Below, in pieces: positions 3,371 to 14,200 of a stretch of DNA of 64,000 bases. Each line of letters begins with the position of its first letter. The stretch's first letter is position 1. A model generated the notes under the pieces. The model ran no database searches. It worked only from the letters and a program-made list of their open reading frames with translations, and had not been told where the DNA came from. The position numbers and the translations under genes were made by a program. Source of the DNA: Laetmonice hystrix (lineage: Eukaryota); assembly GCA_965235115.1 (NCBI GenBank), contig OZ249439.1:1550001-1614000 (forward strand), read 5' to 3'.

Positions 3371-6300
3371 ATGGCGGCAAAAGCACTGCAACACGTACTC
3401 GAGCTGCATGTTGAAGTACAAGAGAGATTCAACCAAAACATTCAGCATATAATTGACAAGGTATAATCTTTTTGTTTCTCCCTGTGATGTGTAGAGAGTA
3501 GAGTCAGTAAAGCAGGGCTGCGGTCGGGAGCACCTCATAGACATCACCTAGGCTAGGTTCCAACTTCCAAGTTTCAAGATTTGAAATGCTGCCTGGGAAA
3601 CCAATGCTGGTCATGGGCGGAGCTTGGATTTTTCAATTTTTTTCTGGGGAAGGGCCCCCAGACCCCCCGCCCAAGGTTTCACGCCTTTGGCGCTCCCATG
3701 AAATTGTAGGTCCCGTATGTTCAGTGCCTGTTTTCTTGTGTTGAGTGTTGTGCCTTGCTCTTGCCTTGGCTTGGCCTGGATTAGGCATCCTATGCTAGCC
3801 TTAGGCCTATGGCCGTATGGGATGGCTATGCCCACCTGTCAGATTTTTGTTTAGCTGCCTTACATTTTATTCTGTTTTTTTTTTCAGTACAGTGATCCAC
3901 ATATGCCATCAGATGTAATAAGTCTGGGAGACATGTCAATATGTGAAGACAATGGTAAGAAAACATTCCAGACATGAAGTCAGGGTTTCAACCAGAAATT
4001 TTTTTTTGGGTAGGGACCAATGCATCTGCTAAGGTGCCCACTTTGATGGGGCTCTCGCCCAGAAAAATTTGCATTTTTAGATGTGATTAGACACGTTTTT
4101 CCCAGTGTTGTTTGATTTAAATAATTTGATTTAGATTTAAATCACTGCAAAAAAATCGTGTTTTTTATTTTTTGGCCATTTAAAAACTTTTTTCATATTT
4201 TTCATATTCTATGTGCCACTTGCAGTTTGGATTAACATTTTTATAAATTCTTGCTATACATAAAGTAATTTTGGTTGCAAACAAGGCCCACCTTTTTAAA
4301 TGATTTCGATTTCCCGGTTAATAAACGATGAATCATGATTCTTGACTATGTTAAGCAAAACAATCGGGGAAAATTGCATCAAAATCAAATGTACAGTAAA
4401 GTTTCCAGCGTAAAAAAAAATCTGATTTAAATCCTTTTTTTTTTTAAATTACGATTTTTTCCAACCCTGGTTTTTCCTTCATCTTAAGCAATAGTTGTCT
4501 CATTTCATTTTTGTTCTGATTGAGACAGGTGCTCAGTTTTTGTTTTTTTCTTTTTCAGATAGGCTTTATTTTCAGAAGAGAAGAGGGATACAGTTAAAAT
4601 TTATTTTATTCATGTACTAAACTGCCTAATTGATTTTCATCGAGATGTGGCTGTAATTTGTGGAAATAAATCCTTGCTACGGCAATTAGATGTGGGGGAA
4701 TGACTAGTGGAGTAGTGGTAGGCCTAAAAATGCATATTCCGTTAAAAAATGTCACTTAGTAGCCTGACATTCTAATACTGAAAAAATTATTTATCACAGA
4801 CTTAGTATGTCAACATTGGATTTCAATTCTCCATAACCAAGTGATGTGATGTCATATTTTAGGTGAACTACAGGGAAGGAAAACGTTGCAGATTGGAAAT
4901 GCTCCATTACCAGCCACAGAAGAACACCAGGCATTCTTGGGTAATTTAAAACTTGTTTTTGATTTTTCAGTGTCGTGTCCAGAATCCAGAATGGTACTTT
5001 ACATGTACATTGGATAGCAATGTTTAAGGTTGAATACAATGTTATACATGTATATGACGAGTAGGGTACTAAAGTGACATAATAGGGAGATGAATTAATG
5101 CCAGTGTTGTTAAAAGTATATCAATGTTCATCTTATAACATGACTGTTTCTGTTGACAGCCAAGAATCCACATATGTCTCCTGCCTGGGGATGCTGTATC
5201 CATGCTGATTCTAATGACTCAATAACCTCGGTGAGAATAGTATTTTGAATAGAGGGAAAACCCACATGGCAAATAAGGTTTCATAGACCAAATGAAACAC
5301 CAGCATTTACCTCAGGGCAATAAATGCCACAATTACGTTGTCTGAATGAAGTAATTAATGCCGATGTGTGATGCCTCAGACGTTTACAAACATTTACAAA
5401 GACTGTGACTCCAAACATCGCGTAGACAAGGTCTGTGAGCAGAGTAACACGTAATGTTATGCAATATGCCGTGGTGTGCAGCATTCGGCTCTGATGAATA
5501 CACAAGTAGGAACCAGCGGCGTCACACATCGGGGGGTTACACGTTAATTACTTCATTCAGACAATTGTGGCATTTATTGCCCTGAGGTAAATGCTGATGT
5601 TTCATTTGGTCCACGAAACCTTTTGTGCCGTGTGGGTTTTCCGTCGCTTTAAGGATTTGTCGTTAGAAGCTTTCACCCAGACCTTTTCCACAGTGCTCAT
5701 TAGTTCCTGTAATTTTGTACCGGTAAGTTAGTAAAATAGACCATGACGTAGGCTACTCTGATCTTCTGAAATCATTGGAGAGGGAAGGTGAGGACAGATA
5801 AAAAATATTTAGTTTGTCTGTTATGAAAAAAAAAATTACTTCTTTGATTTCATTACAGCATTTCACAAATGTTTCTGGAAGAAGAATTCACGATGCTATT
5901 TCACCTGATTGTCACAAGGAACCCGAAGAACTAGCAGAGGAATTTGAGAGTAAGATATCTAAAACTAATACTATTACTAGTGAAATGTGTTTGTGTTGGT
6001 CTCTCATTACTTCATGAGAATCTGAGATCGGCATCTTTTAGTATTAAAAAGTCCATTATATAATTTATTGTCATATGAATAAAGCCAAATTTTTACTGTA
6101 TTAAAACAAGACTTTATCGACTTTTATTTTATAATGTATAATCATAACCACTTACCAGGTGAGAATTAGGATTTGGTAAACCAAAAGTAAAGAGTCATTT
6201 AACACGGGTTTTAATGAAGTTAGTAATAATTGACTATTTATTTATAATTCCTGTTCCAGAATTTCTCAGTGAAACCATGTGTCAAGAACTGAGTGATGCG

Positions 6301-9300
6301 GAATCCGTCAGTTTAAAATCTTCAGACACCGATGATGAAAGCAGTGATGATCTCGTGAATTTGTCCTCAGATAGTGAAGAATTTGTAACATTGAATTCAT
6401 CCAAGACAGTTTCCAATGGAGATCACTATTTGAAAGAGGAAACTAGCAACGGAAGTCAAATTTCATGCATTTCTCCAACATCAGATTTCCTTGAGATATC
6501 AAGCTCAGCATCAGATATCTTGGAAACTGGTGAAAGTGCAAACCAGAGCCTATTGAGATCTGTGGGAAATGATGTGAAACAACTTCAGACACAGTCCCTT
6601 GAGTACTGCATCTCCCAAACAGATCAGTCACCACGGACAGGCCAGTCACCATGGATAGGTCAGTCACCACGGACAGGCCAGTCACCACGGACAGGCCAGT
6701 CACCATGGATAGGCCAGTCACCACGGACAGGCCAGTCACCACGGACAGGCCAGTCACCACGGACAGGCCAGTCACCATGGATAGGTCAGTCACCACGGAC
6801 AGGCCAGTCACCACGGACAGGCCAGTCACCATGGATAGGTCAGTCACCACGGACAGGCCAGTCACCACGGACAGGCCAGTCACCACGGACAGGCCAGTCA
6901 CCATGGATAGGTCAGTCACCACGGACAGGCCAGTCACCACAGACTCCAAAGAGGCCGTTGACACAACAAATGTTACTGAGTTCTGGCAATTCAAGCAGAA
7001 AAAAATATGTAGTATTTGCCTCCTCGCCCAAGGTTGTCAATGTTGATACTGGACAAAGGATGGATCGGCTAATCTCTTCACCGGAGCAGCTGTTGTCTAA
7101 AACTAATAAGGAGGTAGACAGGTTTAAAAACGTGGGTTCTTCCAATGTGAAGCATACAGAAAGAACATCACAGAAGTCCATTTTTCACTCAGAAACTGAT
7201 CGAAAAAAAGGGTTCACACATAAAAGCCCAGTTGAAATGAAAGGGTTCGATCAAGTTAGAAGCCCACCAACTTCCAGCAACAGTCTAATACATAGAAGAA
7301 TAGTACCTAGTAGAATAGAAAATTTAGCTGTTGACCACTCCAATGTTGAAATTGTGGTTAATAACAATGATTTTCACTCAAGGCTTCAGAATGGGACCCC
7401 TAAGCCTGGGACAGCTGTGACTCGTGTTCACCCTGAAAGTGCCTATTGGCAAGCTGTTAGTGAAAAATTCCAAAATCTGTCTAAACTGGCGGGGGCTGAT
7501 TCACCTAAAGGATTCTCCAAACTGGCGGGGGCTGATTCACCTAAAGGATTCTCCAAACTCTTAGGCAGGAATATGTCCAAAGGGTTCTCCACAATGGACA
7601 AGACTGATTCACAAAAAGAATTCTCCAAGCTATCAGGCAGTGACACGTCAGTGGAATTCTCTAAACTGGCAGGCTCTTATTCTTCCAAGAGATTCTCCAA
7701 AATGGACTACACTGAAATGTCGGGCAGTGATTCCACAAAGGAATTCTTCAAACTGGATGGCACTGATTCAACCAACAAATATTCCAAACTGGATGGCACT
7801 GATTCAACTAACGAATTCTCTAAACCAGATGACACCGATTTTCCCAAGGTATCCTCTAAATTGTCAGGGAGGGAAATATCCAAGGAATTCTCCAAACTAG
7901 ACAGCAATCATTCACCCAAGGGATTCTCCAAACTTGACAGCAATCATTCACCCAAGGAATTCTCCAAACTTGACAGCAATCATTCACCCAAGGGATTCTC
8001 CAAACTTTATAGCACTGCTTCACCTAAGAGATTGAACAGCACGGGTTTCACCAATAAATTCTCCAGACTGTCGGGTAGTGATATGCCCAAGGGATTCTCC
8101 AAACTGAATGGCACTGATTCACCAAAGGGATTCTCCAAACTGAATGGCACTGATTCACCAAAGGGATTCTCCAAACTGAATGGCACTGATTCACCAAAGG
8201 GATTCTCCAAACTGAATGGCACTGATTCACCAAAGGGATTCTCCAAACTGAATGGCACTGATTCACCAAAGGGATTCTCCAAACTGTTGGGAAGGGACAT
8301 TTCTCAGGAATTCTCCAAACTGGCAGGATCTGATTCACCCAAGGGATTCTCCAAACAGGTAATCTCTGGGGAATCTGAGGAACCATCTATTGGAAAAGTG
8401 GAGAACTACACACCAACCAAAATGGAGATAATAAAAGCAATGAAACGAAAAATAGGTTTCTCGCCTGCCACTCAGGGTGATTTAATGCTTGGGTCAAACC
8501 CATCACCCAAAGGTCCCAACGGGAAGGGAAGACGAAGACGAAGTGAAGCGGTAGATGATGTTGTGGAGTGTCAGAATGAGCAAGATGATGTGCCTAGTAA
8601 TCCTGCAACCAGGAAGGCTGAACGTTCTTTACTGCTTACAGAGGATAATCTCAGAATTCACACACAAATTCTTGACAATCATGTCAACACAAATATAAAT
8701 GTCCATGACTTTTTAATCTCAACTGCCAAGCTGTCACCATCCTCAGAAGCCAGCAGGGTCACTGTCTGTCAGCCCCAGGGTGATCACAACAGGTCGCCCG
8801 GAGCTCAACATACACCCTCCAAACTAGGTCAAGTAGGTTTATCAATCCAAGCAGACCTAGGGGAAGTCAAACCAGCCAAGACACCAAAATCTCCTGACAA
8901 ACGATCTGTATCAGCATCAAAGAAACCTTCACTTGGTCTTGCATGTGAAAAAACAAGCACACCAAGGAAAACAAAAGGCCCCAACCTCAACATAAGTTGC
9001 ATTTCAGTGATCCCACAACAAGCTTCTGTGAACAGTGGGAAGGTCGTCGGACTGAAAACATCATTGGTCCAAGATGCCATTGATTTTTCCTCCAAGATGA
9101 CGGACAATATTTGCCTCGTTCCAGTACTTTCTCCATTAGATAAGAAAAAGTTATATCGTAAATCTGTGAAAAATAAATGTTACATGGATCCATCCACAGG
9201 AGCTTTCAGGAAAGAAAAGAGCCCAGGAAGTTCATTGAAGAATGAGTTAACAAATGTATTGCATGATAGCAGTAGGCCTAGAATAAGACACAAGGAACTT

Positions 9301-9681
9301 CTAACTCGTGAACCTGCACCACAAGTCCATCCGATGAGTCGGCAACTCCAACCCCAGAAAAAATACCAGCGACTTAAATCTACATCCTCTGAAGATGCCA
9401 ATTTAGGGGTTTATAGTCTCAGTGACACGTCCTCGGAAAGTAAAGACTCCTCCAATATAAAGCCAAGTGATGTGACTTTTGTTATCAACAGTAAGAGAAA
9501 GATTAACTATTCACCAGAAAAGGTCAACCCTGTGGGTTCTGCAAAGGACGTTGGAAGCAGCTGGAAGCTTGTGGCTGTAAAACGGGAGAACACTTCGAAA
9601 ACACACCAAGACTCCACAATCTGCCTCGGCCCTGAGCACTGTACAAAATCTTTTTGCTTTGTATGTTCATGTGGAAGTTAG
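3371..9681 (+). CDS. HJURP: Scm3/HJURP-family CENP-A chaperone candidate, 1272 aa, 6 exons
   Basis: Exons 3371-3460, 3888-3954, 4863-4940, 5160-5230, 5859-5949 and 6260-9681 are all GT-AG and phase-compatible (3819 nt). The N-terminus ELHVEVQERFNQNIQHIIDKYSDPHMPSDVISLGDMSICEDNGELQG fits the Scm3 motif (helix-IIxKY...D.(I/V).L...I.EDNG). The C-terminus is CLGPEHCTKSFCFVCSCGS. Family assignment is by motif recall, not a database search. Confidence 0.75.
6625..6948 (+). repeat. Coding 18-bp tandem repeat, (QSPRTG/QSPWIG) x17 plus QSPQTP
   Basis: cagtcaccacggacaggc and cagtcaccatggataggt units lie in frame within exon 6 of the Scm3-like gene. Confidence 0.95.
7477..8358 (+). repeat. Coding 36-bp repeat, about 23 copies of FSKLxGxDSPKG
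   Basis: Degenerate 12-aa units, with five identical FSKLNGTDSPKG copies at about 8095-8275. Confidence 0.9.
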
Positions 9682-10310
9682 CCCCCTCCAGAGACACAAC
9701 AATTTGTATATACTACACACTGAAACAGTGTTATGTGCAGTGAATTTAATTATTTGATCAAGTACTAAAGGGTAGAATTTTCACAATCTATTTTGTTGAA
9801 TTTGAGTCATTTCATTTTACATAATCCTCTAATCTGTGGAATGGAGTGCCCCAACCTGAAATAAATCCAACAGCTGCCCAGAGAATAGGAAACTAACCGA
9901 GTTGCCCACCCAAATTGACCCTGGATCACCATTCTTTCCCTGCATTAGTTAGGCCCAACCCATTACAATTAACGTCTCTCCTACAATGTATGGTGCTAGT
10001 CCTGGGCAATTTTGGGACCATTCATTTTGTAAAATCGGGGGATAAATAAAATATGTAGGCTGAGATCACTTTTTCACAAAGAGCACCCCTATACATGTAC
10101 TTCCTTTAAAATTAGGGCAATTTATTTATTTATTTAAAATTCAAAATGATCCTTTAATTTTAACGAAACTCGCTTCAGTTTAAATCATTCAATTTACCTC
10201 TGAGTAAAACTGCTTTTTTTTTTTTTTTTTTTTTTGTTTGCATGACTGCTACTGTGCTAGCACCTTGATCAGCACCTTCGCTGCACTGGCCTCTGTCGAT
10301 TAGTGATGTT

Positions 10311-11236: not shown

Positions 11237-14200
11237 ATGAACAGTGCAGCTAGCCCGGTAAGAAAGTCTGCGCAGTGTCGATATTTCGTTAACAGTGGGA
11301 CCTGTTTTTACGGGGATGAGTGCCAGTTTCTTCACGAGAATGCTCGAATCCGCAAGGCAGATGGCCCAACTCCAAGTCATCAATCTGAGCCTGTAAACTC
11401 CGAAAGCGGAGGTAAGATTGGGGCCGACACTGGCTCCGGCAGAGACGATCGAGACCCTGCGAGGGTGGTAAGTTGAGGGTTGCTCCACCGTGTCGATCTG
11501 TCCGAGTACCGCGCAGCATATTGTGACCCCTCGCTGTGGTCGAGCGGGAGCTCAGTGACAGTGCGTTGTTGTTGACACGCCAAATGATAAATTAGTCTAC
11601 CATCTTAGACAGGACCTGGTTGTTGAAAGCCGCAACCTCACAGAGCCAGCTGTTGGGGATTCGCGTGTTGTATGCTGCGTGTTATTTCATTCCGATACAA
11701 GTTTTGAACTGGTTTTATTGTATTCTGCTGAGTCGCATGAGATGGTATTATTATTTCTCATCGGTGAGTTCAGAGTGAGGCCCTGTCTCAATCGGCATGG
11801 CCGGTGAGGAGTTCACGGGGGCAACTGCCGCAGCACAATGGTTTAGGCCCTCCTCCCCCACCCCCAACCCACCCCCGCACCACCACCACCACCACCCGCC
11901 CCAGTTTCAAGTTTGGGTACAACTACAAGACAAGTAGATCTACTACAACTGCAAAGCTCCATTGATTGGTCAACTCAAGTCAAGCCCAGTCAGTAACGTT
12001 AGAGACTAGAGGAATAAAGGGCCGCAGTCCCATTGTCTCAGATCGAAATGATGAAGATGGGGAAACTCTACCAGAACTCAGAGAAACCACGGGCCCGTTT
12101 CACTTAGTTGGCAACTTCACCAGTCAAAATGTCGCCAACGGGGCACATCGCCAGAACGGGCGACACATTACCTTATATGTTATATGGGCTGGCGACGTCC
12201 CATTTAGTGACATCACTCTTTCAACTTGATCATGATGAACATGAAATTTCTTGACCCCCCCCCCCTCCCCAAAAAAATCAATCACTCCTCCAATGAGACC
12301 AAAATAAAACTAGCCCTAACCCTAGGCCTGGCCTAACCCAAGCAATTTGTTTGGCATTGGTAATTAGTCAATCTAAGATTATCGCATTTAGCCGCTGCTG
12401 GCTAAATATAGGCCTACACTTCCATTTTTGTTTTTGTTTTTTTTTTTCTTTTTTTCTTCTGAATTCCTACCGGCAGGCCGTGGCTGTTGGCTTTGTATCT
12501 TCCAGCGCCTATTGGATCCGATAAATGGCAGAGCTATAACGTTATTGCTGGCTGTGGGTCAGAAATCTTCAAATTTGAGAATGAAGCAGACTCAGATCCT
12601 AAAGCAGTGGGCACTAAATTGGGAGCCCGGGACTACCAAAAAATAATACAGACAACCATGTTGATGATCTGCAGTTGTCCATGGGCTGATGCTGTTTTGG
12701 TGGAGAACTGAAGCATTGTGAATTAAAGATTTAATATTAACAGACGTTGATGATTATTGTTTTGGGTTAGTCATTGTTTGTTGGAAAAATTTGCATAATC
12801 ACATTCCTCATGGAAACCTTGAAGGGATCAAAAGATTCAAATAAGGTTTCTCAACTTTCTGGAATAAGATTACATGTATATTGCCTTTTTCTAACAGAAG
12901 TCTACCCTATTTTTGGGGAGTGTCAGAATTGGAGCCAGATTGGTCATGTGATACAGAGATTCCTGATCACCTAACGGAGTGAGAAGTACCTGGTAAGACA
13001 GCAACGATCAGCTTAGCAAAAGTTACATGAACCAAAGGATGGGAGTTGAGATATATAGAATTAATATCTGTCAATCAACCTGCAAACAATTTTAAGTTGC
13101 TGTTCAGTTGTGGTTAATTTCTCTTTCCAGTGATGTCGGCTGAAGGAAATAATGGTGACCAGTTTTTTAATGCAACATTCAGTGGTGGCCCAACAAATGG
13201 CATCACAGATTATCAACCGATGTATATGGTGAGTATTTTGCCTTATTGAATAAAGGTCTCAATGTATACATTTAATTTTCAGGATTTAGTAGGCCTGATT
13301 TATTAATGTATAAGGGACATGTATGTAAGTTTTGCTAATCAGAAAATTAATTAAAAAATTAGTGATACCTGGTTTGTTATTGACAGGGTCGGAACCCCGA
13401 TGCTTCAGAATTTGTTCCGAAATCCACAGTGCTCACGCACAGCTCCAGTACTCCATCCTTCGCCTCCTACACACAGATGGCAACACTAGGGGGAGGATCA
13501 TCCCTTACCACCCCTATGACACAGCTGCCCCCTGGTGAGTACAAAAGAAAATATACCTAGGGTCCATCTACTATAGGATGTTTAGTAGGTGAGGCCCATG
13601 AATGAAAACGAGGGATTGTTACCAGGTATTGCCCTGTTGTTGAATGATCAGACCAGAGTTATGATTATGGAGGCAGCAATGATCTCAAAGTAATAAAAAA
13701 TAATGATAAATATGATGTATACATCTGCAGCATAATATAACAACTTTAGAGTAGCCTCTTAAGGAGGTATGATCGTCACGTAGTTTGGGCCACTGCGCAA
13801 TGTTTGCGCACCGTCAGTCAGTTCGGACAGCTAGTTTACGACAGTGTAAGACTGGCTGTCAATATCCATAAAATTAGAAGATTATCACATTATTTGAACA
13901 CCACTCTCTCTTAAACGCCATTTTATGCACTATATAGGTATATATACAAATACAACTTGTCATAAGTGTGCATTGAATCCGATTACGACAACGCGATCGA
14001 GAGGGAACACGCGGCTGACTCGCGAGTGTCAGTGGGAATGGTGTCAGGCAGGGAGGTGCTCGGCGGGAGGACCGGCCGACCGGCCAGGCGGGTGGCGGCC
14101 TCCGCTCCGCTCTGCTCCCACTCAGCCTCGGAGGGCGGGAGATATAGGGCGACCTTCTTGAGGGCATACCAAGGCGGGGGGGGGGGGGGGGGGGGTTACA

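Follow-up and report, generated by a model that had tools for sequence, protein, structure and literature searches.

The HJURP/Scm3 gene and its surroundings

The window analysed here, 64,000 nucleotides of Laetmonice hystrix DNA, contains an HJURP/Scm3 gene at 3371-9681 on the forward strand. Reading the DNA upstream of its cysteine-rich end and joining the exons gave a gene of six exons, with an in-frame product of 1272 residues (Table 1).

The stretch is present in four public runs of one sample, available as contigs and not as raw reads; three of the runs are DNA-like and the fourth, X4, is RNA-like. A 414-nt X4 contig contains the three joints that link exons 3 to 6, each of them with GT..AG borders. 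The joint 3954>4863 was also assigned, on the basis of the loose end of this contig. A second X4 contig spans 8257-9772 without any joint and runs across the stop codon. Thus, the TAG that closes exon 6 is the true end of the frame and is followed by a 3'UTR. These RNA-like contigs, from one sample, show that the gene is transcribed.

Table 1. Features of the HJURP/Scm3 gene, its neighbourhood and a related metagenomic locus. L004 is the locus of the animal orthologue and P0001 the open reading frame (ORF) of the orthologue's last exon; L006 and L007 are metagenomic contigs. Positions without a contig name are those of the window.
Feature	Position	Strand	Description and basis
Exon 1	3371..3460	+	Start codon and first half of the Scm3 domain, read from the DNA; 75% identity to L004 exon 1; within the HSP to the Pfam-positive Scm3 stretch of L006
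Exon 2	3888..3954	+	KYSDP...ICEDNG core of the Scm3 domain; its end is carried by the loose end, at 4862, of an X4 contig
Exon 3	4863..4940	+	Joint 4940>5160 in X4; 59% identity to L004
Exon 4	5160..5230	+	X4 joints on either side; restores the reading frame
Intron 4 element	5245-5652		90-nt terminal inverted repeats (5245-5334, 5563-5652), 89% complementary
Exon 5	5859..5949	+	X4 joints 5230>5859 and 5949>6260
Exon 6 (last)	6260..9681	+	3.4 kb; acceptor joint 5949>6260; ends with the Cys tail and TAG
Exon 6 before the tail	6260..9621	+	Mostly low-complexity; two lineage-specific repeat arrays, few conserved islands
In-frame arrays in exon 6	6625-6944 and 7723-8356 (also 7483-7559)		18 nt x 17.8; 36 nt x 17.9
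Exon 6 islands shared with P0001	6265-6321, 8413-8469, 8635-8691, 8959-9015, 9385-9441		12-14/19 residues each
Core Cys4 motif C-L-G-P-E-H-C-T-K-S-F-C-F-V-C	9622..9666	+	C-x5-C-x4-C-x2-C; proposed zinc knuckle
Last four residues S-C-G-S and TAG	9667..9681	+	Fifth Cys at 9670-9672, not conserved
3'UTR	9682..9772 at least	+	X4 contig reaches 9772; X4 depth drops after 9768
ORF fragment with CCCH-type zinc finger	11237-11476	+	About 1.6 kb downstream of the HJURP stop
TAF11 (metagenomic)	L006:1402-1797 / L007:2331-3299	-	Pfam TAFII28

The identity of the gene comes from its N-terminal part. Residues 20-68 of the spliced product (..IIDKYSDPHMPSDVISLGDMSICEDNGEL..) align to residues 129-177 of a metagenomic protein described below (contig L006), a stretch that Pfam scores as Scm3, with a pairwise E-value of 8e-7. 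An N-terminal Scm3 domain (PF10384), a family characterised by a helix, a KY motif, an acidic/hydrophobic strand and D-x-G-x-L, is recognised from this alignment. On this basis, the gene is an HJURP/Scm3 CENP-A chaperone. The split of the domain between several exons hampers direct profile searches: exon 2 of the orthologue (L004) taken alone does not reach the cut-off against PF10384 (E 0.003), and for the same reason a six-frame PF10384 search of the species' own genome returned no match to the gene; its controls were silent too.

The long last exon is mostly low-complexity. Its 18-nt array encodes QSPRTG/QSPWIG and its 36-nt array SPKGFSKLxGTD; P0001 has no such arrays, so both expanded recently and only in this lineage. 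A spurious Pfam 'Cementoin' match on exon 6, which we discarded, is due to the first of them. The islands shared with P0001 read LxETMCxExSD, PxKxExIxAMKxKI, LTxDNLRIH, TSTPRKxxxPxLxISCISVIP and LGVYSLSxxxSES. As candidate linear motifs, they might be phosphorylated or might bind partners such as Mis18, Mis16 or CENP-C. We found none of the five in the metagenomic Scm3. In-frame insertion alleles occur at 8472 and 9034 (+CAG and +GTGGCT) in further contigs from this sample. Several non-synonymous SNPs fall in exon 6, so that the disordered body of the protein is polymorphic, while the variants in the tail are synonymous only.

Two further observations were made around the coding exons. The element with inverted repeats in intron 4 has a word depth of ~1e5-3e5 in the DNA runs, against ~60 in its flanks, and looks like a very high-copy MITE-like transposon. 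Downstream, the ORF fragment with the CCCH-type zinc finger is probably an exon of a neighbouring gene.

The cysteine-rich tail and its conservation in an animal orthologue

The sequence at 9622-9678 (+) reads TGC CTC GGC CCT GAG CAC TGT ACA AAA TCT TTT TGC TTT GTA TGT TCA TGT GGA AGT and encodes CLGPEHCTKSFCFVCSCGS, followed directly by the TAG at 9679-9681. These last 19 of the 1272 residues hold 5 of the 18 cysteines of the protein. The chance of at least five cysteines in a given window of 19 residues is 6e-6, and ~0.007 such windows are expected over the whole protein. An earlier note on this DNA had proposed a C-terminal motif C-x5-C-x-K-x-F-C-F-x-C; the reading of the DNA and the unspliced X4 contig through the stop confirm both its presence and its spacing.

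Then, we searched for relatives of the C-terminal region. An exhaustive phmmer search with the last 250 residues against 1.84 billion representatives matched a single protein or cluster, P0001 (E 5.5e-14). A second protein, P0002, is its 99%-identical twin. They come from two ENA assemblies, and each corresponds to the orthologue's last-exon ORF. The locus of P0002 (L004) shares the six-exon layout of the window gene, and its Scm3 exons are 72-75% identical. The other searches are to be read with their sensitivity in mind. Word-indexed protein searches with regions 740-1139 and 1050-1139 of the last exon returned only the query, as did one with region 975-1241 of P0001, the index and the E-values of short regions limiting sensitivity in these searches. 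When the C-terminal alignment was used to search the JGI metagenomes, no relative came up, whereas a looser hand-made motif pattern did match. The ESM Atlas gave no usable match to the tail.

The two animal genes differ strongly in their last exon, with 27% identity overall. Conversely, the tail of the orthologue, CLGPGKCTKAFCFLCSSTS-stop, is identical to that of the window, CLGPEHCTKSFCFVCSCGS-stop, at 13 of 19 positions. This makes it the second-best conserved among the 1121 windows of 19 residues (binomial P 2e-4, the window having been specified beforehand). Seven of the 13 kept residues are encoded by synonymous, different codons in the two genes, the position of the stop codon is shared, and the 3' flank beyond it is unalignable. 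Identity above the 27% background, synonymous codon change, a common stop and an unalignable flank together indicate that the tail peptide is, at the level of these comparisons, under purifying selection. The three polymorphisms found within the sample in the last 130 nt (9552, 9654 and 9669) are all synonymous.

Conservation of the motif in orthologues had been set as a test that could refute the earlier proposal, and the motif passed it in one orthologue lineage. The comparison also narrowed the description of the cluster, which had been given as four or five cysteines. Four are kept in the orthologue, while the fifth (in C-S-C) is replaced by Ser in its terminal S-S-T-S-stop; the five-cysteine version was thus dropped. 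This leaves C-x5-C-x4-C-x2-C as the conserved core, or, with its other residues, C-x-G-P-x-x-C-T-K-x-F-C-F-x-C.

A metagenomic Scm3 gene ending in the same motif

To search DNA collections, the core was written as a 45-nt degenerate pattern with 20 fixed and 7 two-fold positions, which corresponds to a chance of 7e-15 per site. The pattern was absent from the 596 Gb of bacterial and archaeal genomes scanned (~1.2e12 sites; 0.008 matches expected). A 27-nt pattern for the nine-residue core CTKxFCFxC occurs once in the 627-Mb genome of the species itself, and this single occurrence is the tail. Among the contigs of JGI metagenomes, the 45-nt pattern matched two, L005 and L006, which carry variants of one gene. 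The same gene is also present in a third JGI sample and in an ENA assembly (L007/L008).

On the N-terminal side, the ORF of L006 at 318-1145 matches Pfam Scm3 with an E-value of 1.2e-10 (41.4 bits; cut-off 24.3). An intron of 86 nt at 1141-1226, with GT..AG borders, joins this ORF in frame to the last exon, which ends CHGPGECTKAFCFDCMMKTS-stop. The metagenomic product has 295 residues and ends ...ACHGPGECTKAFCFDCMMKTS (...QQACHGPGECTKAFCFDCMMKTS-stop). The motif, CHGPGECTKAFCFDC, lies five residues before the C-terminus, the protein closing with M-M-K-T-S-stop. Between the two gene variants, the intron differs by several substitutions and a 2-nt indel, and the last exon by one synonymous change. 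The greater variation of the intron compared to the exons supports the gene model. The other contig, L005, differs in its first part (L005:1-~330; first ~830 nt of the reverse complement), which shows no relation to L006/L007/L008 and does not contain the sequence coding for the Scm3 domain. A chimeric contig or a rearranged allele could account for this.

A blastp comparison of the two complete proteins, that of the window and the metagenomic one, gave exactly two significant HSPs, one on the Scm3 domain (E 8e-7) and one on the tail (E 4e-5). The four cysteines and the G, P, T, K, F and F of the core are invariant in the window, in P0001/P0002 and in L005/L006. The match of the tail was selected by the pattern itself, so the informative part is the Scm3 domain, which was not selected for and yet lies on the same short protein. 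The co-occurrence of the motif with Scm3 domains in other taxa had been the second refuting test of the earlier note, and a metagenome scan based on the motif only led to one gene, which codes for Scm3. Thus, the window gene, L004 and the metagenomic gene (L006/L007/L008) all encode the module on one polypeptide with the Scm3 domain and C-terminal to it, and the proposed two-module architecture, an N-terminal Scm3 domain plus a C-terminal cysteine module, is common to very distant lineages. In this comparison, the animal side is represented by one orthologue lineage and the non-animal side by one lineage.

The source of the metagenomic gene has a GC content of 53.5%, a short intron and a compact genome. 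The compactness is seen from a single-exon gene for TAF11 (TFIID subunit; Pfam TAFII28, E 1e-27), which converges on the metagenomic Scm3 gene and lies only ~110 nt from the stop of the latter. The nearest Atlas clusters to the metagenomic Scm3 are ascomycete and basidiomycete Scm3 proteins. For the TAF11 neighbour they are of plant, oomycete and basidiomycete origin, and the nearest PDB entry is human TAF11. We take the organism to be a microbial eukaryote, probably a fungus.

Proposed metal binding, centromere targeting and origin of the module

Four cysteines in a stretch of 15 residues, with a G-P turn following the first and a final C-x2-C knuckle, would fit a Zn(Cys)4 site. General knowledge of small metal knuckles is the basis for this assignment: the four invariant cysteines would hold one Zn2+ in a single tetrahedral site, and the Cys4 tail is probably zinc-binding. 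Once folded, the knuckle could expose the invariant Thr-Lys and the two Phe (T-K, F-x-F) as a binding or recognition surface. The N-terminal Scm3 domain would carry CENP-A/H4, and the tail would help to deliver the loaded chaperone to centromeric chromatin. Structure prediction and profile searches added little to this picture. AlphaFold2, run on a shallow tail alignment of five rows, gave a pLDDT of 49 and no confident fold, and a homodimer prediction for the last 40 residues with two Zn, run without controls, scored 0.01. A Pfam search with the last 127 residues (E up to 10) returned only spurious LTD and DUF4692 matches and no catalogued zinc-finger profile, and a PDB sequence search with the tail returned nothing meaningful.

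Among known systems, the closest is the CYS (cysteine-rich) domain that Scm3 carries in fungi. Aravind, Iyer and Wu are said to have described it in 2007, in large Scm3 proteins of fungi, as a 'novel cysteine-rich metal-chelating cluster', and Folco and colleagues, in 2024, reportedly found that the CYS domain binds zinc in vitro and is essential for the localisation of Scm3 in fission yeast. To our knowledge, this domain has been described for fungi only. In both cases the CENP-A chaperone that bears the Scm3 domain also has, C-terminal to it, a cluster of conserved cysteines, and the metagenomic Scm3, itself probably fungal, ends in the identical core C-x-G-P-x-x-C-T-K-x-F-C-F-x-C. The difference is in the host protein, fungal there and an animal HJURP of 1272 residues here. 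Two features expected of a CYS module are found in the tail: invariant cysteines at fixed spacing, in three lineages and under purifying selection, and a position C-terminal to the Scm3 domain. The tail may thus correspond to the published fungal CYS domain, to which it is likened by description. In view of the literature on the Scm3 CYS domain (Folco, Aravind), the likeliest function of the tail would be that of a zinc-stabilised targeting module, taking the CENP-A/H4-loaded chaperone to centromeric chromatin. Coherently, the title of Folco et al. 2024, a work to which PMC13322267 refers for conserved DNA binding, states that the cysteine-rich domain of Scm3 'ensures centromere targeting'.

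The retroviral-type CCHC zinc knuckle (zf-CCHC, PF00098, C-x2-C-x4-H-x4-C) offers an analogy only. It has a similar size (14-15 residues), holds a single metal and has aromatic and basic residues beside the ligands, which in CCHC contact nucleic acid; the tail, however, is Cys4 without His and has C-x5-C-x4-C-x2-C spacing. Since no Pfam profile matches and the ligand spacing differs, the tail was assigned neither to this family nor to other catalogued zinc fingers. In vertebrate HJURP, the C-terminal repeats HCTD1/2 (R1/R2) bind Mis18 and dimerise. Like the tail, they are a C-terminal part of the chaperone outside the Scm3 domain, and they are responsible for centromere delivery (PMC13322267), but they are long helical repeats instead of a cysteine cluster, and their sequences show no detected similarity to the tail. 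Short conserved C-terminal modules are also known from CAL1 of Drosophila (CENP-C binding) and NEFR-1 of Caenorhabditis, which are otherwise fast-evolving Scm3/HJURP orthologues. These motifs are lineage-specific and are not described as cysteine motifs (Hollis et al. 2026), whereas the tail of the window is shared with a non-animal Scm3. The text of Hollis et al. 2026 and its accessible supplement do not mention a cysteine tail; a cysteine motif is not described in Pidoux 2009 or in reviews either. On account of its absence from Hollis et al. 2026, we rate the tail as a fungal-type CYS module that would be new to animal HJURP, the fungal Scm3 CYS domain being already known.

That a very distant eukaryote, probably a fungus, has a Scm3 protein with the same terminal motif is most likely explained by inheritance from an ancestral opisthokont Scm3, and the Cys4 module of HJURP/Scm3 seems, on present sequences, to predate the animal-fungus split. 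Our main reading, to which we give a probability of about 60%, is that the tail is a minimal Cys4 metal-binding knuckle, held by Zn2+ and directing the protein to the centromere, which forms a second conserved module of Scm3/HJURP and most likely derives from that ancestral protein.

Common descent has to be weighed against convergence, in which the motif would be a conserved feature of annelid-type HJURP and a microbial Scm3 line would have gained a C-terminal Cys4 knuckle independently. The motif is short (15 residues), the metagenome match was picked by the pattern itself, and metazoan HJURPs have little in common outside scm3. The C-terminal regions of Scm3 are also said, after Aravind and colleagues (2007), to gain and lose DNA-binding modules. 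Against this, 11 of the 15 positions are identical, the non-ligand G, P, T, K, F and F among them, the placement is the same, 4-5 residues before the stop, and even a variable position agrees between P0001 and L006 (CTKAFCF). Moreover, the pattern is absent from the ~1.2e12 prokaryote sites and has no second copy in the 627-Mb own genome. We therefore consider convergence unlikely. The chemistry of the site raises a different alternative, slightly less likely still, that the four cysteines are ligands of an iron-sulfur cluster, or a redox or disulfide switch, and that there is no structural zinc site. For Cys4 sites in proteins that handle DNA, an initial assignment to Zn has repeatedly given way to 4Fe-4S, as in the CysB motifs of B-family polymerases. 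A span of 15 residues with a C-x2-C knuckle is, however, the usual spacing of small zinc knuckles and would leave very little room for a cubane cluster, and the fungal CYS domain, as noted above, reportedly binds zinc in vitro.

Two other explanations appear highly improbable. The superficial likeness of a cysteine-rich extreme C-terminus could suggest a lipidation signal (prenylation or palmitoylation) or a C-terminal degradation signal. Lipidation was rejected because CaaX, CC and CXC are all missing at the true end, whose terminal residues are S-x-x-S; in addition, the conserved cysteines are at -5, -8, -13 and -19, the one nearest to the end is not kept, and the protein is a nuclear histone chaperone. 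Equally remote is the idea that the tail lies outside the main product, as an alternative 3' exon or a chance ORF end. The transcript evidence consists of contigs from one sample, which leaves some room for it, but the RNA-like contig is unspliced from 8257 to 9772 through the stop, and the orthologue keeps the tail, its frame and the stop position, the codons of the kept residues differing only synonymously.

Returning to the metal-binding targeting knuckle, a broader version of this reading can be proposed tentatively, although we hold it to be less probable than its opposite. The Cys4 tail could be an ancestral opisthokont centromere-targeting module, recognising a feature of centromeric chromatin or DNA directly, which was kept in annelid-type (spiralian) animals and fungi and lost or replaced in vertebrates (by Mis18-binding repeats), in flies (by a CENP-C-binding domain) and in nematodes. 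If true, it would represent a targeting route independent of lineage-specific adaptors.

Scm3/HJURP evolves fast, and for a long time most animals were believed to lack an orthologue. According to the survey that detected these orthologues (Hollis et al. 2026), they have essentially nothing but the scm3 domain in common. A tail of 15 residues could serve as an independent orthology marker that is easily searched. If shared by descent, it implies a two-part ancestral chaperone, with a histone-binding head and a metal-binding tail, and may help to date the swaps of vertebrates, insects and nematodes to other targeting devices. In spiralian animals, its four cysteines, T-K and F-x-F would offer a mutable handle on how the centromere is found.
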